Sequence record: MT612988.1 | Length of the DNA stretch: 64,000 nt | Reading direction: 5' to 3' (one strand) | In this document: one piece after another, positions 4,727 through 52,591 of the stretch | Layout: each line of letters starts with the position of its first letter | Numbering within the stretch: the first letter of the stretch is position 1 | The notes under the pieces: generated by a model | Told to the model about the DNA's origin: nothing | The model's database searches: none | Seen by the model: the letters and a program-made list of their open reading frames with translations, nothing else | Made by a program: the position numbers and the translations under genes

Positions 4727-6355
4727 ATGATTGGATTTCAACAATTAAATGAAAACATGAGCGCAACGTACGACTATTATCCGGCTCGCTCGACCAAAGA
4801 AAACAAATTCTTTGTGATCGACATGAAAGGCGAAGCCAGAGACATCGTTGTTTCGTTCACAACTAAAACAAAATCAGATATCGGAAATCGCGGTAAACGT
4901 TCTTGGTTCTGTACTGTATCAGCAATGCGCGGCAAAAAAGGCGGTGTTACTATTCGTGAAATGGGAGATGAACAAAAGCTTCAACAAACTATTGTTAAAG
5001 TGGTTCAAGATTTCATGATCAAACGTCGTGCGAATGTCGTTTCAATGCGTGTGCAGAAACTAGGTACGGGTAAGATGTTCGACTTGCGCGTTAAAACGTT
5101 GTTTAAAAAGCTACGTTACGGCTGTGATACAACTAAGATTATTGGCGTGGGTGGTGAAGAAATTTCGCAAGATTACAGCTTCTTTATTGTAACCAAACCA
5201 GGGTATAATGCCGATAAGCTATTCGAAGCATCTGAAGAAACAATTAACGATATTGCGTTAAAAATGTCACTCGAAACTGATATTTCAAGCAAGAAAACGA
5301 TTATCGTAACTGCCGATGCTGCGTATGACGACTATGAAGATGACGTACTAGGTAAATGGGTAGAAGAAAACCCCGCTGCACGTGTTCCAAATGATGTTCT
5401 TCAAATGCCTCAATATGAAGCGCGTGTAAGTTCGTCTGTTCGTTCTCAATTGAATGAAAGCAATGAACATGTTCTTGCTAATGCTGCGAAAGGTTTAATT
5501 GATATGAGTTTGAATCTTGAAACTGTGGCAGTTTCATTGAATTCATATATCGCCGAATCGAAGAAGCCTCAAAGCGTTCTGAATAGTATCATGGAATCTC
5601 GCTCACGTGCTCATGCAAGTCAGTATGAACGTCTTTCTTTGCAACTTATGCAGGAAGATTCATTTGCGGGTCTATCGTCACTTACACAAGCGGCTATTGC
5701 TAGATACTCCGCGACTCGTTTTTCATGGAAGGTGAATGAAGAGTTATTACACGGAACTGGTGTTGATAAAGAATCACAGATTGTCTCACGCATCGACCAA
5801 GCGTTTTCTGAAGCTGGTATGATTGCTGGTGGAATGACGTTATATCGTGGCTGTGAAATGTCAAGTAAACATGTGCGCTCTATTCTTGAATCTGGCTCGT
5901 TTGTTTCGACTGCGTTTATCTCAACGTCAATCGACCCTCTTGTTGCTTGTAAGTTCGTTGAATCAAGCTCTAAGAACATCATTGATTCAACTGCTAAGAA
6001 TAGTAAATCAGATATGCGTTCTCTGCTTGAGTCAGATAAGAAAATGAATGTTGTATTCATCATAGAAGCGAGCGGCTTGCCTGTTTTAGCTTCAGGTAAA
6101 CACGGTATGAAAGACTCAAAAGAGATTATCATCAACCGTAATACGATGTTTGAAGCTGACGTTGTTCAAATGTCTGAATACGACGCTGTAATTCGATTGA
6201 AAATCAAAGAAGATACGAAGCAAGGTGTATTGTCTGCTTTCAAAAAGCAAGACCGTTTACACGAGCTTTCAGAAGTAGCTAATTTCATGCGTTCTGTTGA
6301 TGTAGATGTCGATGCAGATAGACTAACAAAAGAGCGTAGTCCTCTAACACCATGA
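4727..6355 (+). CDS. Alt-like ADP-ribosyltransferase (R-S-E class), probably virion-packaged
   Basis: C-terminal LYRG (R374), FISTSID (S399-T-S401) and SKEIIINRN (E466); N-terminus MIGFQQLNE; late promoter. Confidence 0.75.
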   Translation: MIGFQQLNENMSATYDYYPARSTKENKFFVIDMKGEARDIVVSFTTKTKSDIGNRGKRSWFCTVSAMRGKKGGVTIREMGDEQKLQQTIVKVVQDFMIKRRANVVSMRVQKLGTGKMFDLRVKTLFKKLRYGCDTTKIIGVGGEEISQDYSFFIVTKPGYNADKLFEASEETINDIALKMSLETDISSKKTIIVTADAAYDDYEDDVLGKWVEENPAARVPNDVLQMPQYEARVSSSVRSQLNESNEHVLANAAKGLIDMSLNLETVAVSLNSYIAESKKPQSVLNSIMESRSRAHASQYERLSLQLMQEDSFAGLSSLTQAAIARYSATRFSWKVNEELLHGTGVDKESQIVSRIDQAFSEAGMIAGGMTLYRGCEMSSKHVRSILESGSFVSTAFISTSIDPLVACKFVESSSKNIIDSTAKNSKSDMRSLLESDKKMNVVFIIEASGLPVLASGKHGMKDSKEIIINRNTMFEADVVQMSEYDAVIRLKIKEDTKQGVLSAFKKQDRLHELSEVANFMRSVDVDVDADRLTKERSPLTP

Positions 6356-6358
6356 TCG

Positions 6359-6384
6359 AAAAAGGGAGCAAATTGCTCCCTTTT
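6359..6384. terminator. Bidirectional terminator
   Basis: aaaaa-gggagc-aaatt-gctccc-tttt between convergent genes; identical 26-mer at 47107-47132. Confidence 0.9.
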
Positions 6385-6387
6385 CTT

Positions 6388-7269
6388 TTATCGAATATCT
6401 TCTAGTTCATAACCCCAGATATTACTAAAATCTTCTTCTGATTCGACGTAATACAATGTATCTTGCTCACATAAAATCATATCACCTGCATCAAGCGCCG
6501 CACCTTTTTCACTAATATCAAATGTACGACCTGTTTTAGTGCGAACTGTAATATCACCTAGCATTGACAGCCAAATGTCAGCCGAATCTAAGTTATTGAA
6601 CTTACCACGCGGAGTTGTTGCTTCAATGTGAATAACATCACTCGATTTTCGCTCTATGTAAACTCGACCGTGTGGCAATCCAAATCGAATGAAATCTCCG
6701 TCGTTGTCTAACCAGAATAACTTAGCCCAAGTGAATGCGTTAGTATTTGGGAAAATAACGTACGTTAGTTCTTCTTCTTTGTGAATCCCGTCGTTATGCA
6801 GTCTGCGAACTTTCGGTGGGTTATTGTTCTTCAATGTGAAGCTATTTCCCATGACGTGAACCGTATAGTCCATCTTGTTCGCGTATCGCTCAGCCATACG
6901 TTTGTACAGTCGGAAACGTTTGTCTGCATCATTGCGATCTTCATCTGAGTACGCACTAAACGCAATCTCATCAGGGTTAATCTCAGACGCTTTTTCAAAC
7001 GTAGCAGCTAGAATCGTACTTAATACTGTCATGGCATCTTTAGGCGATCCTTTTGCAAGCGTGTGCGTCCAATTGCCTGTTTCACGATCTTTTCGTTGGA
7101 AAGCTACATATATGCTTACACCGCGTGGCGTTTCGCGATCTTGAATCGTTGCTAGGTATTGGGTCCCGCCTACTGTGAAACTAGCTTCATTGTGCATAGC
7201 ATCCCATCTATATGGCACTGGTCGGTCGAACGCTTCAATTAACGTTTCTCCATGTTCAAAAATGATCAT
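6388..7269 (-). CDS. Hypothetical late protein; N-terminal AFDRP domain shared with 51609-52529
   Basis: MIIFEHGETLIE|AFDRP; TATAAATA at 7294-7301. Confidence 0.8.
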   Translation of the reverse strand: MIIFEHGETLIEAFDRPVPYRWDAMHNEASFTVGGTQYLATIQDRETPRGVSIYVAFQRKDRETGNWTHTLAKGSPKDAMTVLSTILAATFEKASEINPDEIAFSAYSDEDRNDADKRFRLYKRMAERYANKMDYTVHVMGNSFTLKNNNPPKVRRLHNDGIHKEEELTYVIFPNTNAFTWAKLFWLDNDGDFIRFGLPHGRVYIERKSSDVIHIEATTPRGKFNNLDSADIWLSMLGDITVRTKTGRTFDISEKGAALDAGDMILCEQDTLYYVESEEDFSNIWGYELEDIR

Positions 7270-7293
7270 TTTCGTTATCTCTCTAAATGAAAG

Positions 7294-7301
7294 TATTTAT
7301 A
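7294..7301 (-). promoter_or_regulatory. Late promoter TATAAATA
   Basis: Exact consensus between the ligase terminator and ATG 7269. Confidence 0.8.
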
Positions 7302-7304
7302 CGC

Positions 7305-7327
7305 AAAAAGGGGCATAAGCCCCCTTT
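7305..7327 (-). terminator. Terminator after DNA ligase
   Basis: ggggc-ttat-gcccc followed by a T-run. Confidence 0.8.
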
Positions 7328-7328
7328 A

Positions 7329-8666
7329 TTAACCTTTGAACCCGCTCATTTCTTCAAGCGCATTCGCAACATCTTTGTCATCACGGAATTGCACGAAAAT
7401 AGGCAAGAAACAAGACCATGTTTCTTTATTGCGTGCGCGTGTGATTGCGTTGTAGTTGATTTCAACAATCATACCGATTACTTCATCACGACGTTCCCAA
7501 ATTTCAGCACGCTGTTTATCACTGAAGCCACTACCGACTTTAGTAATCAACATACCGCAAGCTGAACGAAGAAGAAGAGCACCCATTTTGCCTTTGTTCT
7601 TCTTGTCACCTTCGATTACTTCAATGATCTCTAAATCACCATCGTGAACTTCTTTGTATTTCACAAGTGATTTGCTTCGCTTGTTTTCCCAGAGTGCATC
7701 TGGGTCTTTCAAGATGATACCTTCTAGACCTTGAGCAACGTACTGATTGTAGATTTCAGATGCTTGTTCTTTTGTAGAAACAGTCTGCCACGGAATCGGT
7801 TCGATGATACCACGTGCTTTAATAGCAACATCTGCAAGAATCTGTTTACGTTTACTGTACGGCATGTTCAATTCATTCGACTTACCGAAATAAACGTCTT
7901 CAGGGATGATATCCCACACTTGAAATACAATGTCAGCCTGTTCTTTCGGTGTGATTGTACCTTTGCTTGCTTTGTTGACAATGCCATTACCAGTCGAACG
8001 GTCTTCAACCTCATGTAAACCGTTTGGCGCGTACACAAGCTCACCGTCGATAACAAAGCCGTTTACACCCATTTCAGTCAAACCTTTCTCAACTTTGACT
8101 AGACCTTGATAGCGTTTACCGTTACGCGATGTAAGAGTAATGTTACCATCTAAGTCAACATGAGCGAAACAACGAGCACCATCAGCTTTCAATTCAGCGT
8201 ATGCGATTTTAGTTAGAATCGCGTCGATTAGTTTGTCGTTCTTCGGGCTTGCAAGCATTTGAGGTTGTTCTGGAATCAGTTTCTTCCAAACTTTGTTTGC
8301 AGTACCACCCGTACAACCAGTTCGAAGGTCTTTCAATATAACACGACGAATCACTTCCGCGTCGTCTTCAGAAACTGAAGCGAGTATACGAGCAACAAAA
8401 TCTTGTGCAGAATGACCGCGCACTTGATTCACAACCAACGCACTAAACACTTGCTCTAGTGCATCTTCTAGTTCGGTATATTCATGCACATATGCTTCAC
8501 CTGCATTCACTTCAGGCAGTTTCTTCATATTAAACTGATACGTAGGTGTGTATGCAAGCTCAAATACACGCTTTAGCAATTCATTGTCTTTTTCAGACTT
8601 CAGGATTGCTTCTTTTTCAGTGCGTTTAGTCGTTGCTGCTAGTTTATTCAGGATTGGTAGAATCAT
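7329..8666 (-). CDS. 30: ATP-dependent DNA ligase gp30
   Basis: ELKADGAR (KxDG), IDGEL, EGIILK, WENKRS and VGSGF motifs. Confidence 0.97.
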   Translation of the reverse strand: MILPILNKLAATTKRTEKEAILKSEKDNELLKRVFELAYTPTYQFNMKKLPEVNAGEAYVHEYTELEDALEQVFSALVVNQVRGHSAQDFVARILASVSEDDAEVIRRVILKDLRTGCTGGTANKVWKKLIPEQPQMLASPKNDKLIDAILTKIAYAELKADGARCFAHVDLDGNITLTSRNGKRYQGLVKVEKGLTEMGVNGFVIDGELVYAPNGLHEVEDRSTGNGIVNKASKGTITPKEQADIVFQVWDIIPEDVYFGKSNELNMPYSKRKQILADVAIKARGIIEPIPWQTVSTKEQASEIYNQYVAQGLEGIILKDPDALWENKRSKSLVKYKEVHDGDLEIIEVIEGDKKNKGKMGALLLRSACGMLITKVGSGFSDKQRAEIWERRDEVIGMIVEINYNAITRARNKETWSCFLPIFVQFRDDKDVANALEEMSGFKG

Positions 8667-8856
8667 CTGGACCCTCTATATAAATTTCAGGACGAACACG
8701 TGCAACAAAGCACTGCTCGTGTAAATCATTTTTGTACAACACTTTAAGTGCATCTTGCTCTTTCAGGTACAATGCAGGCATTGTAACATCACCGAGATCA
8801 ATAATCGCCACTTCTTGGTTGCTTTTCATTAGTATAGCAAACATCATTTTCCTCAA
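8644..8856 (-). CDS. Hypothetical protein (likely ATG start near 8847)
   Basis: ORF in operon orientation with GAGG SD. Confidence 0.6.
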   Translation of the reverse strand: MRKMMFAILMKSNQEVAIIDLGDVTMPALYLKEQDALKVLYKNDLHEQCFVARVRPEIYIEGPDDSTNPE

Positions 8857-9097
8857 AATATACGTTGCCGTTGTTGATTGTTACTAAGAATGGCTTACCT
8901 GCGATATGATCACCGTAAATGTGAACAATATAATCACAAGCTTCTTTGTTCCATTCTTGCCAATCGGTTTGCAATTCAGCTTCCCATTCTTCTCGATTCG
9001 AAAAGAACGGCTTGCCTTTTGCCTCTCGCTTATCTAACGCAACAGCACGTTTTGCAAGTGCGCTATCAGCATGAATAATATAAGCTCGTTTAATCAT
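8798..9097 (-). CDS. Hypothetical protein, 99 aa
   Basis: ORF downstream of the promoter at 9130-9159. Confidence 0.65.
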   Translation of the reverse strand: MIKRAYIIHADSALAKRAVALDKREAKGKPFFSNREEWEAELQTDWQEWNKEACDYIVHIYGDHIAGKPFLVTINNGNVYFEENDVCYTNEKQPRSGDY

Positions 9098-9107
9098 AAT
9101 TAACCCA

Positions 9108-9159
9108 AAAAAGCCCCGACAGGAGCTTTATTATATGATGAATGTAAGACGTGTTAAAC
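9108..9159 (-). promoter_or_regulatory. GTTTAA-18-TATAAT promoter directly followed by a terminator hairpin
   Basis: -35 at 9154-9159, -10 at 9130-9135, hairpin aagctcc-tgtc-ggggctt plus T-run at 9108-9129. Confidence 0.6.
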
Positions 9160-9160
9160 T

Positions 9161-9754
9161 TTATTCGTGAATAAAATCTAATAGCTTTGACATATGATGA
9201 ACGTCTGCTCGTTCGTCATATCGATTGAGGTGTACCACTTTAAGGTCGTGAAAACACTTCTTGATTTGCTCAGTATTTTCTAACTGATCATCAATGAAAC
9301 CGATCACGTCGTGATCTGATACTAGCTGAGAGACATAACCGACTTTGCTCTCATCACCGCGAATAGTAATCAATTCGCTGAAACAACCCGGGAAGAATGT
9401 TTCTAAGTTGAACTTGCGCACAAGCCAGTGATCAGTTGAATCACCGAATTTAGTCAGCGCAACAAGATTGTATTCTTTCGCGATTTTGTGAACGTTCTCT
9501 ACCGCATCAGGGAACGCAGTCATGTACTTACCGTGCTCAAGATTATACTTCTCAAGTAAGTCAAATGCTATTGAACGCTGCTCGACACCGAATAAATCAC
9601 GTACGTCAACATGCTCTTTAGCAGTGAAGTGTTTTAATGCAAGAACGGGGTCGATACCACATCGCTTGCAGAATAGCGGTAGCTGGCTTGCCCAATCAAT
9701 AAGCACACCATCTACGTCGAAAATTAGAGTAGGTTTTTGTTTCTTGTCTGTCAT
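9161..9754 (-). CDS. HAD-superfamily hydrolase, T4 30.2-like (start ATG 9754)
   Basis: LIFDVDGVLIDW (DxD motif I), ALTKFG, FIDDQLEN (motif IV). Confidence 0.8.
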   Translation of the reverse strand: MTDKKQKPTLIFDVDGVLIDWASQLPLFCKRCGIDPVLALKHFTAKEHVDVRDLFGVEQRSIAFDLLEKYNLEHGKYMTAFPDAVENVHKIAKEYNLVALTKFGDSTDHWLVRKFNLETFFPGCFSELITIRGDESKVGYVSQLVSDHDVIGFIDDQLENTEQIKKCFHDLKVVHLNRYDERADVHHMSKLLDFIHE

Positions 9755-9767
9755 AATATATTTCTCG

Positions 9768-9965
9768 TTACATATATTCAGCGCCCGTGAAGACAATGAA
9801 CATAAAAGTAAAACAAAACACAGCAACAGCTACTAACAATGCAGTTACACTAGCTATCATTGAATCGAATTCGTCTTCAATAATCTTATTGACTACATAT
9901 ACTAATGGCGTTGCTGATACGAATACTAGAATAACACCTAGTGTTGCTAATAAAATTTGAATCAT
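9768..9965 (-). CDS. Small membrane protein with two hydrophobic segments
   Basis: MIQILLATLGVILVFV... and ...ALLVAVAVFCFTFMFIVF; GGAG SD. Confidence 0.7.
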   Translation of the reverse strand: MIQILLATLGVILVFVSATPLVYVVNKIIEDEFDSMIASVTALLVAVAVFCFTFMFIVFTGAEYM

Positions 9966-9991
9966 ATTGTGCTCCTTTATTTGAAGCATCT

Positions 9992-10027
9992 ATGATAATG
10001 AAAAGGGCTGCAAATTGCAACCCTTTT
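9992..10027 (-). promoter_or_regulatory. Early promoter TTGCAA-17-TATCAT with its -35 inside a terminator stem-loop
   Basis: aaaaggg-ttgcaatttgcag-ccctttt; -10 at 9992-9997. Confidence 0.65.
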
Positions 10028-10029
10028 GT

Positions 10030-10539
10030 TTATTTCATCCACTGTTTGCGCTTTTTAGAGCGTTTCCACCCGCGCTGTGGAGATTTGTAAGACGATAGAC
10101 CATCCCAATCTAGAAGACAGCGAACTGTATGAGCACGTTTTTTGCGAACTACTTTACCGTATTCGGCTTCAATCTCGTCTTCACAGAACTTGTTATGATG
10201 CATTTCAGACATCAAACCGTTACCGCGTCGAGCATGAATCCAGTTCTTGTAGCAACCAGTATGTGGCACTGGCGTGTAACGAAACACGTAGTTACCTTTG
10301 TAACGTGCTAGACATTCACCATTTCGAATTAGGTCAATCATACGTCTTGCGCTAGTTGACATGTAAAACCCAACACGTTCTGGGCTCCAGAAGCTCTGAT
10401 AACGAACGTATGTTCTAGCCCACTCAGGTACCCATTCACCATCCCATAATTCGAAAACATGATGAGGTCCCATTTCGCGTGAGTTGTATAGTGGTAGATC
10501 TTTTTCTTTTACGCCTTTGTATTTTTTGACTTCAGTCAT
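10030..10539 (-). CDS. Hypothetical protein with basic C-terminus
   Basis: 169-aa ORF with GGAG SD. Confidence 0.75.
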   Translation of the reverse strand: MTEVKKYKGVKEKDLPLYNSREMGPHHVFELWDGEWVPEWARTYVRYQSFWSPERVGFYMSTSARRMIDLIRNGECLARYKGNYVFRYTPVPHTGCYKNWIHARRGNGLMSEMHHNKFCEDEIEAEYGKVVRKKRAHTVRCLLDWDGLSSYKSPQRGWKRSKKRKQWMK

Positions 10540-10598
10540 CGTTGTTTCTCCAAGTTAAATTACTTAGTGAAACAACTCCTTACGATGAAATTTCTTCA

Positions 10599-10844: not shown

Positions 10845-10884
10845 TGTATTACCTTTTATTGTTTTATTTGACGCACGTATTTAA

Positions 10885-12455: not shown

Positions 12456-12722
12456 TCAGAAGTAGTCAGCGTACCTATCTAAGATTCGCTTCGGGATTTT
12501 TAAGTTTACAAATCTCTTACCTTTCAAACCACCATCATATGCGATTTCTGCAATCAGATCTTCGTACATGTCTGGTTCAAGTTCGTCGATAATGTCCTTG
12601 TACTCTTGTGGAAGCTGTCTCTTCAGCTTCTTAACGAGCGCGTGGATCTCATTTATCGTGAGATCACGCAACTCTTGGTATGTCATTTCGTTTAGGGATA
12701 TTTCAATAAAAGACTTTAGCAT
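12456..12722 (-). CDS. Hypothetical protein with CTS-like N-terminus (MLKSFIEISLNE)
   Basis: GGAGG SD; ATTAAATA at 12741-12748. Confidence 0.7.
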   Translation of the reverse strand: MLKSFIEISLNEMTYQELRDLTINEIHALVKKLKRQLPQEYKDIIDELEPDMYEDLIAEIAYDGGLKGKRFVNLKIPKRILDRYADYF

Positions 12723-12739: not shown

Positions 12740-12961
12740 TTATTTAATCCCTAGTAGCTTACCAATTACGGTCATTGGTAGATAAAAAATGACATAAAAC
12801 AAAATGTAAATCGCAATCTGTACGCCGAAACCTAGTGATAGCATAGCGACGTAAAGCTGCACGAGGTAATAATCTACCTCGGCTGTCGCTGCTTCGTTCA
12901 GTTCGCCGCGAAACTCGCGACACATATCTTCTAGAATTCGAATGAAATTGCTCATTACCAC
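12740..12961 (-). CDS. Small membrane protein
   Basis: Hydrophobic C-terminal half. Confidence 0.65.
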   Translation of the reverse strand: MVMSNFIRILEDMCREFRGELNEAATAEVDYYLVQLYVAMLSLGFGVQIAIYILFYVIFYLPMTVIGKLLGIK

Positions 12962-16493: not shown

Positions 16494-16494
16494 G

Positions 16495-17205: not shown

Positions 17206-17607
17206 TTATTCCTCAATCATACCTTGGCTTACTAGTGAACCTTTGAAACGTTTAAGAACGCCTTCCCATGCTTCGTCTGTGTAAGCATCAATATTGAACA
17301 CTGCGCGAATCTTGTCAAAAAGTTCTCGACGCTGTTCGAGTGGCATTTCTTTGCAGAATATCATGATTGCACCTTGATATTCACGTGCTGTCTCATGCAA
17401 ACCTTTGTACATAAGATGATGTAGATCTAGACCTTTATGGTCAATTTCATGTGAAATCTCGCGTGATAGATGCTCACGCTTCATTTCAGTTTTGAAAATA
17501 TACTTGCCTTCATCACCAGCAGCAAGTTGACCCATGTCGTAGATTTTCTTGTGCATCTCTTCAAGACGCCCGATTTTCTTTTCCCACATTTGATAAAATT
17601 CTGACAT
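17206..17607 (-). CDS. Hypothetical helical protein
   Basis: 133-aa ORF. Confidence 0.7.
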   Translation of the reverse strand: MSEFYQMWEKKIGRLEEMHKKIYDMGQLAAGDEGKYIFKTEMKREHLSREISHEIDHKGLDLHHLMYKGLHETAREYQGAIMIFCKEMPLEQRRELFDKIRAVFNIDAYTDEAWEGVLKRFKGSLVSQGMIEE

Positions 17608-20984: not shown

Positions 20985-21188
20985 TTAAAAATCATCGTCC
21001 CATACTGCTTGCACGGGAGTACATTGCATCAACTGACCGTCAATTTCATAAGTCTCTGATTGCGGTTGAGTACTGTAAGATGTAGGTTGTTCAGCCCCAA
21101 ACAACGTACCAGCAGCTACCGACGCTAGAATCCCTAGAATCGCAATCAAAACAATCAATTCGATCAGAGTAAAACCTTTAGATTTCAT
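20985..21188 (-). CDS. Mini type IV prepilin-like protein, 67 aa
   Basis: MKSKG|FTLIELIVLIAILGILASVA: basic leader, G|F cleavage site, E at +5, hydrophobic helix. Confidence 0.85.
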   Translation of the reverse strand: MKSKGFTLIELIVLIAILGILASVAAGTLFGAEQPTSYSTQPQSETYEIDGQLMQCTPVQAVWDDDF

Positions 21189-25438: not shown

Positions 25439-25918
25439 TTATTCGAAATGTCTGAACTTCTTCAGCTTTTTCTTTTTCTTTTTCTTACCGATAGTTTCAG
25501 GACCTGCATTAGTTACAGCACCAGTCGTTTCACCAGAAGCAATCGACTCTGGTGAGCTACTACCGTCACCCGCATCACCTGCAACAACAGCTTCTTCGAC
25601 TCGAATACACTCTTTCGCGAAATCTTCAGATAACCCGTATTCTTTTGCAAGCTCAATCAGCAACAAATAAGACGCGCCATAATCAAGTGCTGTTTTACCA
25701 CCTGGTAATGCACCAACCATGCGCTTGATATTTCTCACAGTAACATGAAACATCGTCCAGTTACTTTTCTCTTGTGCAGTTACAGGGTCACGCAACTTCT
25801 TACCATCTGCGTCGATGATACCCATTCGATATGCTTCCCAACGTTCAAAACGAAGATGAAGCAAACGAGACAGACGAAGAGCATAAAAACCATCTGCACC
25901 ACGTTTAGCTACACTCAT
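25439..25918 (-). CDS. gp61.1-family protein with C-terminal gp23 N-arm-like segment and poly-Lys tail
   Basis: FYALRL...WEAYRMGIIDADG...TMFH...RNIKR recalled from the T4-like 61.1 family; adjacent to gp61. Confidence 0.7.
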   Translation of the reverse strand: MSVAKRGADGFYALRLSRLLHLRFERWEAYRMGIIDADGKKLRDPVTAQEKSNWTMFHVTVRNIKRMVGALPGGKTALDYGASYLLLIELAKEYGLSEDFAKECIRVEEAVVAGDAGDGSSSPESIASGETTGAVTNAGPETIGKKKKKKKLKKFRHFE

Positions 25919-26742
25919 TATGCCCCCAAGATTTGCTCAAGTTGACGATCAAAGATCTTCTCTGCTTCATCAAGTGGTAATGGTACGCTGCGCATGAATT
26001 CGTGCAGATTATCTTCGCGAATCAGATTTTCAATAGTACTAGATGGTACTTTGTTCTTGACTTCAACGATCTCGAATCGTGTTCCACCTACACGTAGGAA
26101 GTGACGACCTAGACGGCGATACTCAGCTACTTTGTTCGCTTCTACAAATGCAAACACGCGAGTGATACCTTTTTGAATCATAGTCTCTACTTCAGCAAAC
26201 ATCACGCCTTTCGGTGCAACATCGACATCAGAGAACGATTCAAATAATTCAACGCGCTCTTGAAGTGATAAAACCTTGTTCTGAGCCTCAGGTACAAACA
26301 CTTTACCAACAGCACCAACGTGTTCACACGCTTCAGATAATGTTTTAGTCAATTCTTTATGACCAACTGAAGGAATGCTTGAATCCACGTCCATGATACA
26401 CGCAGCGTCAATCGCACACTCATTCACAACGGTTTCATGTTCGAAGAAATCTTTTTCCGAAACGACAAATAGACCCTCATCAAGTTTAGCTGCAATTGCT
26501 TCAGCTTCTTGTTGTTGTTTCTTCATCGTTGCTTCTTCTTTTTCAGCAGCAGATTCTTTGTCAAACATGGTGATTTTGCCGCGAATTGCGTCTCGAACAC
26601 GAATGTCCATCATCGGTGTGATGTTCGCCCCGAGTTCTTTTTTCTTTTGCGTATATAGTTTCTCGATTTCAACTACACCGTCTTTGGTAGTACATTGGTG
26701 AACCGACGCAATAAGTTCTTCCAATTTATCTTTGATAGCCAT
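25918..26742 (-). CDS. UvsW.1-like domain fused to a degenerate cytidylyltransferase-like domain
   Basis: IASVHQCTTKDGVVEIEKLY...DIRVRDAIRGK versus T4 UvsW.1; C-terminal PSVGHKEL and SSTIENL...EFMRSVP. Confidence 0.55.
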   Translation of the reverse strand: MAIKDKLEELIASVHQCTTKDGVVEIEKLYTQKKKELGANITPMMDIRVRDAIRGKITMFDKESAAEKEEATMKKQQQEAEAIAAKLDEGLFVVSEKDFFEHETVVNECAIDAACIMDVDSSIPSVGHKELTKTLSEACEHVGAVGKVFVPEAQNKVLSLQERVELFESFSDVDVAPKGVMFAEVETMIQKGITRVFAFVEANKVAEYRRLGRHFLRVGGTRFEIVEVKNKVPSSTIENLIREDNLHEFMRSVPLPLDEAEKIFDRQLEQILGA

Positions 26743-26745: not shown

Positions 26746-27591
26746 CTACTCCTCGTAAACAATCGTATTTTTAGTAATTCTTGATTCGAATACAACTTCA
26801 ACACGTACACCATAAGGCAATGCCTTAGAACGGCGACATGCATCATTTCTAATCAACATATACGGGTGATATACAGTATCTTTAATATCTTTCGCGTTCA
26901 ACAAAACATCACCGTTAATATGCAAGGTACCGCGTTTGAATACAAAATCATCTAGTGTAAAGCTATTGACTACAACAAGACCGTTATTGAGAATGTCTGA
27001 ACCAAATACAACATGATTTATTTCGTCGTCTCGTAGTCTGCGTGCGATTGGCTGGCTAAGTCTCTTCACTTTACCATCGTCAGAATAGTCCGATAATGTA
27101 ACCATCTTCTTGACTATCATTTGTGATAAAAGCTTACGAGCTTCAGTGCCGTGAATAACGTCAGTACTAGCCCAACGCTCGGCATTTGATTTTTTAATCG
27201 AAATCGGAAAATCGCCGCTTACGGTCTTCAATACCATATCGGCTTTTTTGTTGTTTTTTGTGTCGTGACCAGTCATTTCAATCGACTGAACACCTTTTAT
27301 TACTCGTCGACCAATTTTAATCCGAGTACAGCCAGAATCAATGTGTTGCTTTACAATATTATAGAAATTGCGTTCATTCTCGATGCCCGGATTAGATGTT
27401 GGTTTGACGTATACTCTGCATTTTTCCATCTGTATACAACCAATTGAACTGCCTGGGTCGCACTTCTTGTACGTCCCGTCAAGCTCTTTCGCAAGTTTAA
27501 CAATTAGACCAAGTCGATTTTCATCTGTGTAGATAACGATCTTTCGGCTATTGATAATTCTCGCGTCATATCTTAACAAAACATCTATCAT
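26746..27591 (-). CDS. PD-(D/E)xK nuclease-like late protein
   Basis: ENERNF...KADMVL...PISIKK pattern; late promoter and RBS-occluding hairpin upstream. Confidence 0.5.
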   Translation of the reverse strand: MIDVLLRYDARIINSRKIVIYTDENRLGLIVKLAKELDGTYKKCDPGSSIGCIQMEKCRVYVKPTSNPGIENERNFYNIVKQHIDSGCTRIKIGRRVIKGVQSIEMTGHDTKNNKKADMVLKTVSGDFPISIKKSNAERWASTDVIHGTEARKLLSQMIVKKMVTLSDYSDDGKVKRLSQPIARRLRDDEINHVVFGSDILNNGLVVVNSFTLDDFVFKRGTLHINGDVLLNAKDIKDTVYHPYMLIRNDACRRSKALPYGVRVEVVFESRITKNTIVYEE

Positions 27592-45779: not shown

Positions 45780-45780
45780 T

Positions 45781-45810: not shown

Positions 45811-45828
45811 TGATGACGCGAGGTTATT

Positions 45829-46652: not shown

Positions 46653-46653
46653 T

Positions 46654-46818: not shown

Positions 46819-46988
46819 TGGCACATTGTGTTGTATGTAAACAACCTATTAAAGAAGGCGATGTCACTATTGATACGCCACAAGGCACAGTTCACGCAGG
46901 TCAATGTCAGCAACATTTATCAGAAATGTCTATTTCTGAGTCTGGTGGCGAAACGCAACTTGTAGAAACACAACTACTAAACGGGTAA
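46818..46988 (+). CDS. UvsY.-2-like zinc-binding protein, 56 aa (start ATG 46818)
   Basis: CVVCKQPI...TPQGTVHAGQC...SES...ETQLL resembles T4 UvsY.-2 (from recall). Confidence 0.8.
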   Translation: MAHCVVCKQPIKEGDVTIDTPQGTVHAGQCQQHLSEMSISESGGETQLVETQLLNG

Positions 46989-46992
46989 AGAT

Positions 46993-47103
46993 ATGAGTAA
47001 GAATCGTAAACGAGATCGCGGGTTCTTCGACTGGCTATGGGCGCCATTTGAATTATTTTTTGAGTTAATCGGTGCGATTCTCTCAGCAATCTTTTCAGAC
47101 TAA
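46993..47103 (+). CDS. 36-aa amphipathic/membrane peptide missed by the ORF track
   Basis: MSKNRKRDRGFFDWLWAPFELFFELIGAILSAIFSD; stops just before the terminator. Confidence 0.55.
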   Translation: MSKNRKRDRGFFDWLWAPFELFFELIGAILSAIFSD

Positions 47104-47104
47104 T

Positions 47105-47133
47105 AAAAAAAGGGAGCAAATTGCTCCCTTTTT
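47105..47133. terminator. Bidirectional terminator
   Basis: Same 26-mer as 6359-6384; lies between convergent genes. Confidence 0.9.
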
Positions 47134-47138
47134 CGTAT

Positions 47139-48671
47139 CTATGCGGCAAGATCTACTTTCTTGACTGCGTATTTGAACTCTTCTTGGTTGTAAAGCTCAA
47201 TACGTTGCATACCATGCTTCATAGTATAATTTACGTGAGTGTACGGCTTCTTAGCGTTCTTGCGTTTCGGCTTGATTGCTAAGTTGTCGATAATATCAAA
47301 CAGCTTCGCAGTTACCTTCGAACCGTGCTTACGTAGAATACGACCAATCGACTGTAAGTTGATGATCTTGCTCTTCGTTGGGTGCGCAAAGATTACATTG
47401 TGCAGTTTCTTGATACTGATACCAGTAGAAAACACACCATACGATGCTACGATAATAGCCCCGTCAATATCTTCTGCAATCTTCTTCACATGCGTACGGT
47501 CGTCTGTTTTAGTCTCACCAGATACGTAGAACACTTTCTCTGGGTCATATACGCTCTTCAATGCTTCGTAAAGCAATTTACCGTGTTTGATGTTCTTGAA
47601 CAGCAATAGCGTGTTTTCGCCTTTCTTCGCGCTCAAGTGATGCGCAAGCTTAATCAAGTAACGATTTCGCTGCTTGTTCTCAAGAATGAATTTCATTTCT
47701 TCTTGATATGAACTGCCCTTCATTTCATCACGTAACGGCTGTGGGTATTCAAGCATTAAACAGTTTATCTTCAGATCTGTTACTTGCCCTTCTTCCATTA
47801 GCTGTGCAGTCGAAACAGGTCGGAAAATATCACCGAATGAACCAACGTACTGTAGAATATTCGCTTTACCGTCTCGAAGTGAGCCAGTAAGACCGATTTT
47901 GTATTCACAGTTTGTCATTTTCTTGATGATGCCGTCTAATGACTTACCTGTTGCTAAGTGACACTCATCGACTAAAAGCATACCGAATTGGTCAAACCAT
48001 TCTTTCGGTTGTTTTACAGCAGATTGCCATGTAGATACAACGATTCGGCAGTCACCGATTGCGTCTCGATCAACCCCACCACGAATCTGATAAATGTCGT
48101 TGTGTTCGAATAAACGATAATCTAAGAAGTCATCGCGCATTTGCTGGACAAGTGCAGTTGTAGGTACAATCACTAATACTTTCTGAAGTTCGTGCTCTTC
48201 TTGTGCTAAGAACCATTTAGTAATCAGCGACTGAATTAATGATTTACCCGCAGATGTTGGTAGATTCAATAGACTGTGTTGGTTGTTAATTCCGTGAAAC
48301 ACAGAGTCCATCTGATACCAATACGGTGAAATCTTATTCGACCCTGAGTAGATGTCAATAGACTCAACCCATGCTTCGAAATCTTCACGAGAAATTTTCT
48401 CAATCGGATCTAGCATTGGATCGGTTTCAATCGTATACATCATATTTGATGCAAACGCTTTAGCTTGTCCGACTAGACCGTATGGTAATAGACCTTGATA
48501 CGTCATTAGTCGAATTTTGCCATCCCAAATGCCCATTTTAAATTTCGGGTTAAATTTGTACCCATCTGTTAGAAATGAGAAATAGTCAATCATTTCGTGA
48601 GTGATGCTTGGCTCGGCTACGACTCTCGCATAACTCTCATCGTGGTACTCAATTTTAATGTCACATGTCAT
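47139..48671 (-). CDS. uvsW: SF2 DNA helicase UvsW (start ATG 48671)
   Basis: LPTSAGKS, VDECH, LTGS, QSIGRILR. Confidence 0.96.
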   Translation of the reverse strand: MTCDIKIEYHDESYARVVAEPSITHEMIDYFSFLTDGYKFNPKFKMGIWDGKIRLMTYQGLLPYGLVGQAKAFASNMMYTIETDPMLDPIEKISREDFEAWVESIDIYSGSNKISPYWYQMDSVFHGINNQHSLLNLPTSAGKSLIQSLITKWFLAQEEHELQKVLVIVPTTALVQQMRDDFLDYRLFEHNDIYQIRGGVDRDAIGDCRIVVSTWQSAVKQPKEWFDQFGMLLVDECHLATGKSLDGIIKKMTNCEYKIGLTGSLRDGKANILQYVGSFGDIFRPVSTAQLMEEGQVTDLKINCLMLEYPQPLRDEMKGSSYQEEMKFILENKQRNRYLIKLAHHLSAKKGENTLLLFKNIKHGKLLYEALKSVYDPEKVFYVSGETKTDDRTHVKKIAEDIDGAIIVASYGVFSTGISIKKLHNVIFAHPTKSKIINLQSIGRILRKHGSKVTAKLFDIIDNLAIKPKRKNAKKPYTHVNYTMKHGMQRIELYNQEEFKYAVKKVDLAA

Positions 48672-48696
48672 GATTTTTCTCTCTATGCGAGTTTTG

Positions 48697-48722
48697 TCTA
48701 AATATGTATAACTGTATTTATA
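48697..48722. promoter_or_regulatory. Overlapping divergent late promoters: TCTAAATA (+, 48697-48704) and TATAAATA (-, 48715-48722)
   Basis: Motifs lie in the uvsW / 48736 intergenic region. Confidence 0.7.
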
Positions 48723-48735
48723 GAGGTCTAAATTC

Positions 48736-48945
48736 ATGACAAGAGACGAAATGTTTTACAAGATGAAAGATGGTTGCTTTAAGTTTGAGCATAAAGGCAA
48801 GAAATATCACGCGACTTTATGCAAGCATTATCTACCACATCTTGATTGCAATCGAGAAGAACAACGTAAAAATGAAAACGGTGCAGATAATGAACTTACA
48901 TTTTTCGATTTAAATCGAAATGTGTGGGTAACAATTGAATGCTAA
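48736..48945 (+). CDS. Small WYL_2/SH3-like hypothetical protein
   Basis: FKF..K...HATL...LP...FFDL...W pattern. Confidence 0.45.
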   Translation: MTRDEMFYKMKDGCFKFEHKGKKYHATLCKHYLPHLDCNREEQRKNENGADNELTFFDLNRNVWVTIEC

Positions 48946-48954
48946 GGTAAAACT

Positions 48955-49467
48955 ATGATTAAAGAATATCTAAAGAAACAAACCAAGCGCGTAGTTGCAG
49001 AATTTGCAAAAGAGTACTACGACATCGAACTTGATAAATCGCTGACTAAAAGCAAGATGATCGACGAGTTATTCACACACGAGCTACGCGAGGTTAAAGA
49101 ACTACCACTAGAATGCTCTGTAATCGAGTCTGAGACGCGCTGTGAATCAGTCGATGAATCGGACGCGATTGTAGTCAAAGAGCTTTCAGACGACGTTAAG
49201 AAAGAATTAGAAGGTGTTTCTGCTAATGCCCCTTTAGGTGATGAAAACGTAACATTAGTAATCAAGGACGAATTCAAGCCTAAATGGATGCCTACTTATC
49301 GCCGTGGTGATGAGCTATATCAGCCAGTTGCGCATGATGTGATTCATGATTGGAATATAGGTCGACGCGACTCTCACGAATTGAAGACGATTGAATATTG
49401 GGTTAAGCGAAATGGTCATCTTTTAGTTCACGACCGTCTTTCGAACAGCTTCATTTATCTGAGGTAA
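48955..49467 (+). CDS. Inh-like paralog
   Basis: EFAKEYYDIELD..LTKSKM matches 54288-54782; similar C-terminus. Confidence 0.7.
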   Translation: MIKEYLKKQTKRVVAEFAKEYYDIELDKSLTKSKMIDELFTHELREVKELPLECSVIESETRCESVDESDAIVVKELSDDVKKELEGVSANAPLGDENVTLVIKDEFKPKWMPTYRRGDELYQPVAHDVIHDWNIGRRDSHELKTIEYWVKRNGHLLVHDRLSNSFIYLR

Positions 49468-49470
49468 TTT

Positions 49471-49959
49471 ATGTTACGATTTAATGAATATGAAAACACG
49501 CTTTACGGTATCGAACTGAGTTTATCACTTGAAGAGGGGTGGGGTAATCATAACCTAGCCAAACTAATCCCTGAGCCGAAAATCGATGAGTTACTAGAAA
49601 CGAAACCGAAGCACCCGTGGAAGATTGCTGCGAATGCTGCTCAATACCAGAACTTGCTCTTCAATATTGATTCAAGTCGAATCGTATTCAAGAACACTGT
49701 ATATCAAGTTGCGTATCTAGGTAACTTATACCCGCCAGAAGAAGTCGGTAAACCTGAAGGTGGGTATAAGTTCGCAGTTAAAAAGTCGATTTATCACTCA
49801 CACCCTAGTAGTGAATTTTATTCAGGGAAAAACCCAAAAGACCCTAAGTTAAATGATACTATTTCATTGGTCTGGTGGTTTCAGAGAGGTACAATCGTAT
49901 TCGACTTATGGAAGCATAGCGAATATGATGAAAAACTTGAGAGATGGCGAAGAAAGTAG
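49471..49959 (+). CDS. Hypothetical late protein with CTS-like N-terminus
   Basis: MLRFNEYE...LEE|G; GAGG SD; in the late unit. Confidence 0.7.
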   Translation: MLRFNEYENTLYGIELSLSLEEGWGNHNLAKLIPEPKIDELLETKPKHPWKIAANAAQYQNLLFNIDSSRIVFKNTVYQVAYLGNLYPPEEVGKPEGGYKFAVKKSIYHSHPSSEFYSGKNPKDPKLNDTISLVWWFQRGTIVFDLWKHSEYDEKLERWRRK

Positions 49960-49988
49960 TTGACAACTCAAATGTTTTTGCTTATTAT
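49960..49988 (+). promoter_or_regulatory. Early promoter TTGACA-17-TATTAT
   Basis: Exact spacing; AAGAGAG RBS downstream. Confidence 0.8.
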
Positions 49989-50025
49989 AGTCATCGTTAA
50001 CACAACATAACTAAGAGAGCAGAAT

Positions 50026-50292
50026 ATGAACAAACTCGAAACAGCTTTTGCTGAACATAACGCTGTACAAGTTCCTGTTGAAAAACCTAGAGAGTTTTAT
50101 ACACCGTGTGGCGTTAAATTCACAACTGAACCGATGTTTAATACTGCAACTGGTAAATATGACAGTATTTTATATTCATTTGATACTGGTGAAAAAATAA
50201 TTGTTGACGATGAACTTGACAGCTTTCATGAAGCATATCAAGAATTCACTGGCAAGACATTCATGGCTATTCAAGAGCCAATCGTAATTTAA
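50026..50292 (+). CDS. Hypothetical early protein
   Basis: 88-aa ORF. Confidence 0.75.
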   Translation: MNKLETAFAEHNAVQVPVEKPREFYTPCGVKFTTEPMFNTATGKYDSILYSFDTGEKIIVDDELDSFHEAYQEFTGKTFMAIQEPIVI

Positions 50293-50307
50293 TGAGAGAA
50301 ATATATT

Positions 50308-50934
50308 ATGAAAGATTTAGACATCGTACGTAAAGCACTTGCAACTAACGAGTCACCTAAGCGTCGTAACTTCCGCAAAGCAGTAATTCAATTGCTTGAA
50401 AAGCGTGACTTGACAGTTGCAGAGATTGTATATTCACTTAATGGTGGTGAATATGATGAGCGTCTTCGTCGTCGTGTTCAAGCTAACGTTCAGAATGCAC
50501 CTGAAATCATGGTCACTCGATTCGAAACGTTCGGTCACACCGAGATTCCTGTATACACGTTGAAAGGTGACGGTAAATTAGAAGTACTCATGCCAAAACG
50601 CGAGTCGCCACGTAAGCCTGTATTAGGGATGGAATCTCTATTGACACGTGTTCTCAATCTTGGTCTGGGGCGTGCAGTAGCTGTTGCGGGTCCACAAGCG
50701 GTTGATGCATTTAAAAAACTTGAACCGAAACAGCAAGCTCGTTATATTTCAACGCTTGCATTGTCAGATCACGCACGTTCTATTCTTACGCTTGTACATA
50801 GCGCGAACTTGTCAAAAGAGCAGTTGAAAGAACTGAACGTTAAACAACTTGTTCGTCAGAATGCATCGTATGTTGTAGCGAAACTACACGGTTCAACTGC
50901 GTTTTTCGACAATATCAAATCAGTATACGGTTAA
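50308..50934 (+). CDS. Early protein with possible N-terminal winged-HTH
   Basis: AVIQLLEKRDLTVAEIVYSL...RRRVQANV pattern; 208 aa. Confidence 0.55.
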   Translation: MKDLDIVRKALATNESPKRRNFRKAVIQLLEKRDLTVAEIVYSLNGGEYDERLRRRVQANVQNAPEIMVTRFETFGHTEIPVYTLKGDGKLEVLMPKRESPRKPVLGMESLLTRVLNLGLGRAVAVAGPQAVDAFKKLEPKQQARYISTLALSDHARSILTLVHSANLSKEQLKELNVKQLVRQNASYVVAKLHGSTAFFDNIKSVYG

Positions 50935-50946
50935 ATTAAACAATTT

Positions 50947-50974
50947 AAAAGGGTGACTTCGGTCGCCCTTTTTT
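50947..50974 (+). terminator. Terminator
   Basis: gggtgac-ttcg-gtcgccc followed by T6. Confidence 0.9.
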
Positions 50975-50982
50975 CGTTTGCG

Positions 50983-50990
50983 TCTAAATA
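50983..50990 (+). promoter_or_regulatory. Late promoter TCTAAATA
   Basis: Directly after the terminator, 22 nt before ATG 51013. Confidence 0.75.
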
Positions 50991-51012
50991 ATAGTAAACA
51001 AAGGGGTTAACA

Positions 51013-51606
51013 ATGATAGAATTTTTAACAGAAATGGACAAAGCTAAACAAACCGGTAGATGGGCTCAATTTAAAGCAGCAACATCGGGTTCGAAAGGTG
51101 AAGTTAAAAAGCGTATGCAGCGCAAAGGTGGCTTCTGGGGTGTGTTTGCAGGTTTGATCGCGAGTGCGACAGCATCGGGTGAACTTAGAAAGCACAATAA
51201 GTCACTAGAAGACCATAAGCTAAGAATGGAGCGTGCAGCAGTGAACACAATTCACAGTCTGAATGTTCTTAAAGACGTAATCGAGCTTGAACGTCCTCGT
51301 GACGAAGTAATGAAAGCTGCAAAGCGTTTAAAGCTTGATAACATGGAAATGAAGAAATACGCAACCGAAATGATTCGTGTCGTAGATGAATACAAGCGTG
51401 TTCATGACGAAGATAAGAAGGCAGGTGCGTTTCGTTTTAATGTGAAAGAATACGACCGTCATGATTTTCGTGAGATTTACCATCACTTGAACATGATTGA
51501 AGATAGCACATTTTACGTCGATAAAGCAGCGTCATCGGCTATGACTGGCGATACTGAATACGCAATTCGTATGATTCGCAATATTACAAACGCAGCAACG
51601 AGGTAA
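51013..51606 (+). CDS. Hypothetical late helical protein with CTS-like N-terminus (MIEFLTE)
   Basis: FLTE is the sequence preceding the T4 gp23 cleavage site; late promoter. Confidence 0.75.
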   Translation: MIEFLTEMDKAKQTGRWAQFKAATSGSKGEVKKRMQRKGGFWGVFAGLIASATASGELRKHNKSLEDHKLRMERAAVNTIHSLNVLKDVIELERPRDEVMKAAKRLKLDNMEMKKYATEMIRVVDEYKRVHDEDKKAGAFRFNVKEYDRHDFREIYHHLNMIEDSTFYVDKAASSAMTGDTEYAIRMIRNITNAATR

Positions 51607-51608
51607 TA

Positions 51609-52529
51609 ATGAGCATAATTTTTGAACGCGCTACATTGAAAACTCGAAAAGGTAGTGCAGTAAAACGCAGCAAGTGGGGCGTGGGTAAAGACATTGGCGG
51701 TTCATTATATGTTCACATTGACTATATACCAGATGAGTTCAAGCAAATGGTTGCTGATGCTCGTACTCAAGTATCAATTGCAAACCCACAATTTACTCCG
51801 AATGTAGTACGAATTGACTACAAGAAAGGTGGAGTTGCCTTCTACGATTCAGTTGAATTTGATACTGTACAAGAACCAGCCGCGGGTATGATGATTACTT
51901 ACAGAGACGGTGTTGTTTCTAAACCACGTCAAGTAAACCAAATATGGCATCACAAATGGTTGTGGGTTGGTGATGATTATAGAGGGTTTGATACTTCTCA
52001 GTCATATGACCGCTCGGCTCAGTGGCTAGATCATGACGATATCCCATTTGCCAAGATCGGTAATAAGAAGACATGGCGTGAATGGTTATCTTCAGTTAAC
52101 TTGACTGAGGCATTTGACCGACCATCTAAAATACACTGGGTTGAGAAGAGAATTCACAGTTGGGGTGGTACGTTCACGGTAAACGGGGACGAATACGCGA
52201 TTGCAATACAGTATCAAGAACAAAACGATGCATGGGAACTTGTGTTCTTAGGTATGAACAGTTCGGGTGATTATACTTACAGCGCAACAGGTCGAGGCAA
52301 TATGTATGGTGTGTTTGCGACAGTAATGAGCGGTATGCGTGAATTTATAGACGAGCGAGAGCCAGAAACAATTTATTTCAGTGCAGAGCGAGATATAAAA
52401 AACGACAGTGATTCGAGAATAAAACTATACAATCGTTTAGTAAAACGATATGCTGATACATTACCGAATTACACATATAAAACGGTCGAAGGGAAAGTCT
52501 CGACTAAAACATATTTCATTAGAAAATAA
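51609..52529 (+). CDS. Two-domain late protein: PT-associated-MTase-like domain plus AFDRP domain
   Basis: VGKDIGGSLYVH...IWHHK...IGNKKTW; internal LTE167|AFDRP. Confidence 0.75.
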   Translation: MSIIFERATLKTRKGSAVKRSKWGVGKDIGGSLYVHIDYIPDEFKQMVADARTQVSIANPQFTPNVVRIDYKKGGVAFYDSVEFDTVQEPAAGMMITYRDGVVSKPRQVNQIWHHKWLWVGDDYRGFDTSQSYDRSAQWLDHDDIPFAKIGNKKTWREWLSSVNLTEAFDRPSKIHWVEKRIHSWGGTFTVNGDEYAIAIQYQEQNDAWELVFLGMNSSGDYTYSATGRGNMYGVFATVMSGMREFIDEREPETIYFSAERDIKNDSDSRIKLYNRLVKRYADTLPNYTYKTVEGKVSTKTYFIRK

Positions 52530-52536
52530 GAGAGCA

Positions 52537-52591
52537 ATGAAAACATTTCAAGATTTTCATGAATTCAGCAGATTTCGTACCTGCTTGATAA
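52537..52591 (+). pseudogene. CTS-like stub MKTFQDFHE; possibly a frameshifted 16-aa micro-ORF
   Basis: AAGAGAG RBS; the +1 frame ends TGA TAA just before the terminator, while frame 0 reads through the terminator. Confidence 0.4.

Follow-up and report, generated by a model that had tools for sequence, protein, structure and literature searches.

Candidate T4-type head-internal proteins encoded among early and replication genes of a KVP40-like vibriophage

In phage T4, the first ten residues of internal protein (IP) III are enough for loading into the head; targeting depends on residues 4 and 7, processing on residues 8 and 10, and such a leader is possibly a general loading route for diverse proteins in T4-like phages (PMC9026906). 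T4 leaders were taken here from NC_000866 DNA (accession from PMC2993671): IPII and IPIII have a common ten-residue leader ending in I-A-E↓A (arrows mark actual or predicted cuts), the start of IPI is similar, and Alt, gp67 and gp22 have short leaders with a terminal Glu. Packaged proteins that accompany the DNA into the cell have also been described among the polyvalent proteins of phages and conjugative elements (PMC5512222). The stretch analysed here (64,000 nucleotides, called the window) is identical (100%) to bases 62001-126000 of MT612988.1, the genome of Vibrio phage vB_ValM_R10Z, a KVP40-like Schizotequatrovirus; the subject is a set of dispersed, probably late genes whose products start with T4-like leaders.

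The window contains replication and nucleotide-metabolism genes, a head gene block (gp20, gp67, gp68, the S77 prohead protease gp21, gp22 and gp23, according to Pfam) and a variable region between Inh and uvsW. At least five and at most seven of its genes probably encode head-internal proteins of the T4 kind, which would be targeted by their leaders, processed and retained in the head. An initial annotation had proposed about eight. Its core idea holds for five genes and extends the known T4 mechanism to Schizotequatrovirus; the number overshoots the window (five solid genes) but undershoots the genome, since the related phage 6E35-1b has at least nine further particle proteins with leaders outside the window region. 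The observations that carry this reading are the leaders and their conservation, the layout of promoters and terminators, the orthologs in phage particles and the near-canonical T4-type leaders present in the genus. Genes are named by their window coordinates or by one end of them (Table 1); the five are 4727, 6388-7269, 49471, 51013 and 51609.

Leaders, late units and particle proteins

All eight N-terminal peptides quoted in the initial annotation were found at their starts in the window. The propeptide-end sites of the candidates are LNE, LIE (IFE in short forms), LNE, FNE, LTE, IFE and LSE, and they are kept in orthologs (leaders compared across KVP40, 6E35-1b, F86, D479, nt-1 and 1.081.O). 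That the head proteins of the phage follow the same rule was borne out: gp23 L60-N61-E62↓A63, at the position where mature T4 gp23* chains begin in the alignment, gp68 MKFISE↓A and gp22 MQIKEQLLE↓A were all read in the window. The targeting spacing of T4 (aromatic residues at 4 and 7) is found in 49471 (F4/Y7), in the 1239 gene with a shift of one (F5/F8) and in the non-gene 52537; it is found in part in 4727 (F4/L7), and 51013, 51609 and 6388-7269 have a shortened form with a single Phe. When the alignment is anchored on Glu, T4 YQEFIAE corresponds to MIEFLTE (51013), to MIEFIAE (D479 homolog of 51609) and to F-x-x-F-L-x-E (1239), MIEFIAE matching the second half of the T4 leader nearly residue for residue.

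The leader of the Alt-like protein 4727 is kept at 46% overall identity. MIEFLTE of 51013 is invariant in nine orthologs (66-100% identity) and reads MIEFITE in D479 (37%), while the ten residues that follow it vary. The start of 49471, M-x-x-F-x-E-[Y/H]-E, is kept in five relatives, and that of 51609 is M-x-[I/L]-I-F-E (MIIFE in 1.081.O, MIEFIAE in D479). In the family alignment of 6388-7269, 10/10 sequences have an invariant MIIF, 0-8 variable residues and then [L/I]-x-E↓A-F, with P3, P1 and P1' invariant.

Six candidates have a late-promoter-like NTAAATA site (C, T and A variants except at 6388-7269) 24-52 nucleotides before the start of the gene or its unit, and identical variants precede certain late genes (tail tube, gp22, gp23, gp24, Inh, a tail fibre gene). 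The window as a whole shows no enrichment of TAAATA (39 occurrences against 49.8 expected), and only its placement upstream of genes is therefore informative. The late promoters claimed for all candidates were recovered in this looser form, for the gene or for its unit; the full TATAAATA occurs among them only at 6388-7269, and the 1239 gene has no such site of its own and simply lies downstream of the gp24/gp55 genes. As read from these sites and from the terminators, late units are really interleaved with early ones: early genes 50026 and 50308 separate two late units, and 51609 directly follows 51013 in a unit closed by the terminator at 52594-52617. The arrangement of a terminator followed by a late site before 51013 is also found in nt-1, 1.081.O and 6E35. 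In D479 (L008 9991-13197), gp23 is immediately followed, in the same orientation, by homologs of 52702, 51013 and the N-terminal domain of 51609. The window has these genes in separate early and late units, on the strand opposite to the head genes. D479 and 1.081.O encode the N-terminal domain of 51609 as a gene of its own. A 209-amino-acid gene among the D479 homologs has the size of 50308, but BLASTP gave no match for it.

The R10Z record has no annotation for the uvsW gene (47139-48737, minus strand). Within its longest open reading frame, but upstream of the start implied by the 507-amino-acid KVP40 protein, there is a minus-strand TATAAATA at 48715-48722; the gene thus probably starts further in, and a late promoter is likely.

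Particle data are those published for 6E35-1a (mass spectrometry, PMC12028318, Table S4; PHROGs, Table S8), a paper that makes no mention of internal proteins. Orthologs were matched by PHROG and gene order, and spectra are given as replicate 1/replicate 2. The Alt ortholog VP6E351A_0095 has 122/233 spectra; the orthologs of 6388-7269 (0094), 51013 (0019), 49471 (0022) and 51609 (0018) have 16/61, 21/34, 17/14 and 9/14, respectively. No spectra were found for the orthologs of early genes 50026 and 50308 (0020, 0021) and 52702 (0017). Virion proteomics had been suggested as a check of the claim that the candidates are capsid-targeted late proteins. By these data and the kept leaders, the claim is supported for the five genes and is marginal for 12722 (ortholog 0082, 3/0 spectra); it is unsupported for the 1239 gene, whose ortholog was not detected, and for 52537, which is not a gene.

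A protein of 111 amino acids encoded behind ATTAAATA (53944-54279, minus strand) has an ortholog with 24/40 spectra, yet it has neither a leader nor an early hydrophobic-x-Glu; the leader rule does not cover every non-canonical particle protein.

Most of the 6E35-1b genome was scanned for leader-like starts. Small particle proteins start there with MKTLQEFLAE↓A and, from a second in-frame Met, MKTLAEFLGE↓A; further abundant particle proteins of unknown function have related leaders, two of them being paralogs of the 6388-7269 domain. The T4-derived pattern [F/Y]-x-[E/D]-[F/Y] near the start is found at 7 annotated starts genome-wide, of which 5 belong to detected proteins, against 94 of about 442 (Fisher p = 0.006). 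With a looser motif, 12-14 of about 32 annotated starts are detected (p = 0.002-0.02). No start of a tail, baseplate or fibre gene in 6E35-1b fits the motif. Particle proteins with near-canonical T4 leaders are encoded within the transfer RNA (tRNA) gene region (213214-213468 and 214163-214411 of the 6E35-1b record). For one 6E35-1b gene the annotation seems to place the start ten codons too early; TATAAAT lies directly before the annotated start, and the leader begins at the second Met.

The cargo is heterogeneous: the Alt ADP-ribosyltransferase, two DUF6934 proteins, the helical 51013 protein and the small 49471 protein, encoded beside a second Inh copy. Only Alt has a recognisable activity: according to family models, 4727-6355 is an ADP-ribosyltransferase of the Alt/VIP2 type, with the leader MIGFQQLNE at residues 1-9 (4727-4753) and the ADP-ribosyltransferase domain at residues 317-495. 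The 51013 protein has a basic N-terminal part and a hydrophobic stretch (residues 39-56). In a fold search, its model (mean predicted local distance difference test score, pLDDT, 68) matched its own ortholog solely; a viral_contigs scan gave two close relatives and a word-indexed search 11 hits, all from the Schizotequatrovirus lineage.

The DUF6934 module

In the 6388-7269 protein, the leader is followed by a DUF6934 domain (about 6826-7233) and then by a beta-rich C-terminal domain. The pLDDT of its AlphaFold2 (AF2) model (mean 83) is below 50 at residues 1-13 only; the fold therefore starts after the predicted cut. The 51609 protein consists of an N-terminal domain to about residue 164, an internal L165-T166-E167↓A168 (52101-52109) and DUF6934 (52110-52481). 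Its residues 164-291 correspond to the 6388-7269 family domain (hhalign, 97.5% probability), which begins right after L-T-E.

A word-indexed search with 6388-7269 gave 9 hits, all from the Schizotequatrovirus lineage, and a profile search with the alignment of its first domain, among 1.84 billion representative proteins, gave 529 relatives. These are either stand-alone proteins of about 150 amino acids or modules, often repeated, in proteins of up to 2215 amino acids. Among 45 large distant homologs, 35 match Pfam DUF6934 (PF22028; best E 1e-23), with GNAT, HD, ParB-like and other domains as neighbours; one distant DUF6934 protein is encoded near an Inh_C-like gene (five contexts looked up, on short contigs, one informative). 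Direct Pfam DUF6934 scores are below the cut-off of 27 for 6388-7269 (16.3), 51609 (24.2) and Alt (14 bits). By profile comparison, 6388-7269 and the C-terminal half of 51609 appear to share the DUF6934 domain, which is a new observation; the N-terminus of Alt (residues 15-131, E 0.05, below threshold) is probably DUF6934 too, likewise a new observation. Comparison by hhalign of the 6388-7269 family with the window Alt, T4 Alt and T4 IPIII was negative, and the link between DUF6934 and Alt therefore rests on the sub-threshold Pfam hit and on fold matches. Many predicted phage proteins match the first domain of 6388-7269 by fold; they include Alt-like enzymes from T4-like phages and multi-domain proteins that contain toxin-like or nucleic-acid enzyme domains. 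Foldseek searches of the PDB with the 6388-7269 model gave nothing significant (best E 0.03, faint GNAT-like hints).

A survey of public representative proteins included 117 DUF6934 starts preceded by Glu (53 N-terminal, 64 internal). The P1 Glu was fixed by the search pattern and is therefore not counted as evidence. P3 is hydrophobic at 53/53 N-terminal and 63/64 internal starts, against a background of 29%, and P2 is free. Aromatic residues occur at P4 and P7 of 22 and 20 N-terminal starts, and of 2 and 4 internal ones. The Glu of the N-terminal leaders is most often at position 9 or 10, and some leaders nearly repeat that of T4. The pattern at P3, P4 and P7 fits the T4 split between targeting and processing residues and suggests that multi-module proteins are cut at each boundary. 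That DUF6934 is a general cargo module of capsid-packaged phage proteins, with boundaries that are prohead-protease sites and long chains that are loaded whole and cut in the head, is put forward tentatively, as possible rather than probable. The first DUF6934 copy would then bring a T4-like leader (9-10 residues), and later copies and enzyme junctions would keep hydrophobic-x-Glu alone; 51609 (LTE↓AFDRP between its halves), 6388-7269 and the Alt N-terminus would be small examples.

Proposed route and alternatives

Transcription of each gene would be late, with the NTAAATA-type promoter either its own or that of its unit. Its product would carry a propeptide of 5-12 residues built like the T4 capsid-targeting sequence: a bulky or aromatic residue near the start would serve for targeting, and the terminal hydrophobic-x-Glu would be the processing site. 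The propeptide would dock the protein onto the scaffolding core (gp22, gp67, gp68) during prohead assembly, and the S77 prohead protease (60346-60987) would cut after Glu and, in 51609, also at the internal LTE↓AFDRP. The mature proteins would be retained in the head beside the DNA and presumably be ejected with it at infection. Leader-dependent targeting, cleavage by the prohead protease, ejection and action on the host are inferred, and so is any anti-defence role.

Several points weigh against this route. The loose rule is common: 36/95 window genes (38%) encode hydrophobic-x-Glu within the first 13 residues. Adding Phe at positions 3-6 leaves 11/95 genes, against 3.5 +/- 1.8 in two kinds of shuffle, a figure that overstates the case since the motif was defined after the examples had been seen; four of the matching genes (12740-12955, 17206-17607, 20985-21188 and gp68) were not among the candidates of the initial annotation. 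The 1239 gene has a good leader, yet its ortholog 0102 is missing from the 6E35-1a particle list. The orthologs of both Inh copies have no spectra either (T4 Inh is described as a minor head protein). The particle proteome is that of a relative, with 46-73% protein identity to the window genes, and the preparation was precipitated with polyethylene glycol: enzymes and membrane proteins are present at 1-25 spectra (thymidylate synthase 1/3, ligase 0/2, dUTPase 7/10, NAMPT 16/23, spanins 12/10). Counts of 10-60 are therefore suggestive, not proof, which weighs most on 51013 with its membrane-like segment. Cleavage after Glu by the prohead protease is presumed from sequence, and in the DUF6934 proteins hydrophobic-x-E-A-F-D may be part of the fold, AF2 predicting a short helix for 6388-7269 (residues 7-14). 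PADLOC and NCBIfam gave no hits for eight proteins, sequence searches of the PDB with the two family profiles and Alt found nothing, and fold searches did not point to a function.

It is very unlikely that the leaders are a chance resemblance, or a by-product of A/T-rich starts in well-expressed genes, and that detection in particles reflects contamination of the crude preparation. The frequency of early hydrophobic-x-Glu, the A/T-rich codons of K, I, F, N, E and Y, the enzymes and membrane proteins in the preparation and the hydrophobic segment of 51013 would all fit it, as would 12740-12955, whose leader-like start is unconserved and whose ortholog nevertheless has 7/6 spectra. It is countered by the lack of fitting starts among tail, baseplate and fibre genes, although these are late and abundant, by leaders that are fixed while the following residues change, by the detection rate predicted by the T4-derived pattern (5/7), by the canonical T4-like leaders of the genus and by the absence of early neighbours from particles. 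The proteins may also be in the head as morphogenetic accessories of the core or scaffold, like T4 gp67 and gp68 or IPIII in its assembly role, rather than as effectors acting on the host. The likeness of the leaders to those of the phage's own gp68 (MKFISE) and gp22, the D479 homologs within the head gene block, the pairing of 49471 with an Inh-like gene, the effect of T4 IPIII on the rate of head assembly (PMC9026906) and the lack of an effector-like domain outside Alt are in its favour. It is nevertheless judged unlikely: T4 core proteins are mostly degraded and expelled, whereas the candidates are recovered at counts like or above those of gp21 and gp22, and DUF6934 is elsewhere fused to GNAT, HD, ParB-like and other enzyme domains, as expected of cargo.

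A narrower alternative concerns the DUF6934 proteins, in which hydrophobic-x-E-A-F-D may be a structural element and not a protease site, 51609 then staying in one piece. Every DUF6934 copy has the segment in front of it, internal repeats of large proteins included, and the short AF2 helix covers it in 6388-7269. This is considered somewhat unlikely, since a free P2 with a hydrophobic P3 in 116/117 starts follows the site logic of T4 gp21, aromatic residues at P4 and P7 are added in N-terminal and not in internal copies, the Pfam DUF6934 model begins after the segment, and pLDDT stays below 50 up to residue 13.

If the five genes do encode leader-targeted head-internal proteins, a likely location and assembly route would be available for five "hypothetical" genes from the core set of KVP40-like vibriophages, a group in use for phage work in aquaculture. 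The presence of late genes interleaved with early and replication genes would be accounted for, and a published particle proteome in which these proteins stayed unnamed would be tied to the T4 capsid-targeting mechanism. That mechanism, near-identical leaders included, would extend well past the T-even phages. DUF6934, widespread and uncharacterised, would gain a testable context, and a leader plus Glu-bounded modules would be a simple sequence rule for finding packaged proteins in metagenomic T4-like phages.

Other features and comparison with known systems

Table 1. Candidate genes, head assembly genes and transcription signals of the window. Positions are those of the window; arrows mark predicted cuts.
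Feature	Position	Strand	Remarks
Alt-like ADP-ribosyltransferase, 542 amino acids	4727..6355	+	PHROG 802 E 1.2e-88; Pfam PF03496 24.2 bits (cut-off 23.4)
293-amino-acid protein	6388..7269	-	Leader residues 1-12 (7234-7269) ending LIE↓AF
162-amino-acid protein, leader MLRFNEYE	49471..49959	+	Aromatics at 4 and 7 as in T4; cleavage point uncertain
197-amino-acid all-helical protein, leader MIEFLTE (51013-51033)	51013..51606	+	
306-amino-acid two-part protein, leader MSIIFE (51609-51626)	51609..52529	+	
First 413 residues of a 481-amino-acid protein; gene runs off the window	1..1239	-	Leader MLGNFDSFLSE (1207-1239), F-x-x-F-L-x-E
88-amino-acid protein, marginal candidate	12456..12722	-	Leader MLKSFIEISLNE↓M (12687-12722)
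39-codon frame, MKTFQDFHE start	52537..52656	+	Not a gene
gp21-type prohead serine protease, presumed processing enzyme	60346..60987	-	Pfam Peptidase_S77 E 1.9e-98
Scaffolding core genes gp22, gp21, gp68, gp67; presumed leader docking site	59465..61649	-	
Major capsid protein gp23, L-N-E↓A at residues 60-63	57850..59394	-	
Inh-like prohead-protease inhibitor	54288..54782	-	
Second Inh-like copy, in a late unit, directly before 49471	48955..49467	+	BLASTP to Inh-like orthologs; PHROG 8608
Late-promoter-like CATAAATA	4688..4695	+	Ahead of the Alt-like gene 4727
TATAAATA, late promoter of 6388-7269	7294..7301	-	Directly after a stem-loop
ATTAAATA of 12456-12722	12741-12748	-	
TCTAAATA heading late unit 48751 / 48955 / 49471	48697..48704	+	
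Terminator 50947-50972, then TCTAAATA 50983-50990	50947..50990	+	Heads unit 51013-51609
Strong sigma-70-type promoter, 11/12 matches	49960..49988	+	Drives early genes 50026, 50308
Terminator 52594-52617 and sigma-70-type promoter 52631-52659 ("PeSL"-type composite)	52594..52659	+	Drives early gene 52702-53886
Terminator between the convergent Alt and 6388-7269 genes	6360..6384	.	

In the 6E35 ortholog of the marginal candidate 12456-12722, MLKSFIE and the hydrophobic-x-E↓M site are kept and the residues between them differ. The frame at 52537 has the sole start of the T4 internal protein type in the window (about 0.002 expected). It is ruled out as a gene: it crosses the terminator and promoter of the composite at 52594-52659 and is unconserved, since a single stop codon closes it in KVP40 while 6E35-1b, F86, nt-1 and 1.081.O lack the stretch altogether. 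By this comparison it is probably a vestige of a lost gene, non-coding, beside a terminator-promoter composite of a kind that has been linked to gene shuffling in such phages (PMC4122927). Two other leader-like starts were rejected as candidates, that of 12740-12955 for lack of conservation and that of 20985-21188 for a prepilin-type signal. The latter gene (minus strand, 67 amino acids, located among early genes) encodes a pilin-like protein that matches PF07963 (prepilin-type N-terminal methylation motif, E 2.7e-7); its resemblance to the leader pattern is due to chance.

The protein encoded by 25439-25918 (minus strand, 159 amino acids) is annotated as "major capsid protein" and is gp23-like over residues 107-148 only. 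This stretch, which is followed by a poly-Lys tail, copies the gp23 maturation junction and the first 35 mature residues (VEE↓AVV against LNE↓AVV, 50% identity, E 3e-8). The gene belongs to a unit headed by TCTAAATA, together with 25918-26742 and 26746-27591. Its ortholog has 11/24 spectra, and that of a neighbouring UvsW.1-domain protein has 7/19. It may be another capsid-directed protein, missing from the initial annotation.

Four described systems are comparable. The ejection proteins of phiKZ and SPN3US were compared by literature only: many of their head proteins are described as delivered into the cell once a T4-related prohead protease has cut them after Glu, in another phage lineage and with a different site preference. 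Cleavage logos for giant-phage head proteins are mentioned in PMC9026906.

The polyvalent proteins (PMC5512222) are similar in that DUF6934 is found, single or repeated, in proteins of 400-2200 amino acids beside GNAT, HD, ParB-like, amidoligase and other enzyme domains, and in that fold matches include phage proteins containing ADP-ribosyltransferase, zeta-toxin or deaminase domains. They differ in that the window versions are small, with one or two domains, no MuF-type packaging domain was seen in them and the proposed signal is a T4-type leader.

T4 Alt, a packaged ADP-ribosyltransferase of RNA polymerase, shares with the window Alt the Alt PHROG and the ADP-ribosyltransferase Pfam match, a DNA ligase gene nearby, a short leader ending in Glu and abundance in particles. 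The window protein is shorter (542 against 682 amino acids), tblastn with it does not reach T4, its N-terminal part is DUF6934-like (at a sub-threshold score), and its leader is nearer to the IP type than to MELITE, the leader of T4 Alt.

The T4 internal proteins differ from the candidates in several respects. The mature parts of the window proteins have no sequence similarity to T4 IPs (the IPI family model PF11634, IPI_T4, finds T4 IPI at E 7e-54 and reported no window protein among those scanned), at 5-9 residues most window leaders fall short of the T4 length (about 10-19 residues) and have no counterpart of the first aromatic residue, the genes are dispersed and not in IP loci, and cleavage and ejection are presumed here. 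The two groups have in common a short aromatic propeptide followed by hydrophobic-x-Glu, late expression (predicted for the candidates), location in the head and diverse, unrelated mature parts. The T4 gene ipI lies beside tRNA genes, as do leader-bearing genes of 6E35-1b; the spacing of aromatic residues at 4 and 7 is also that of 49471 and of the 52537 vestige, and MIEFLTE corresponds to the second half of the T4 leader.

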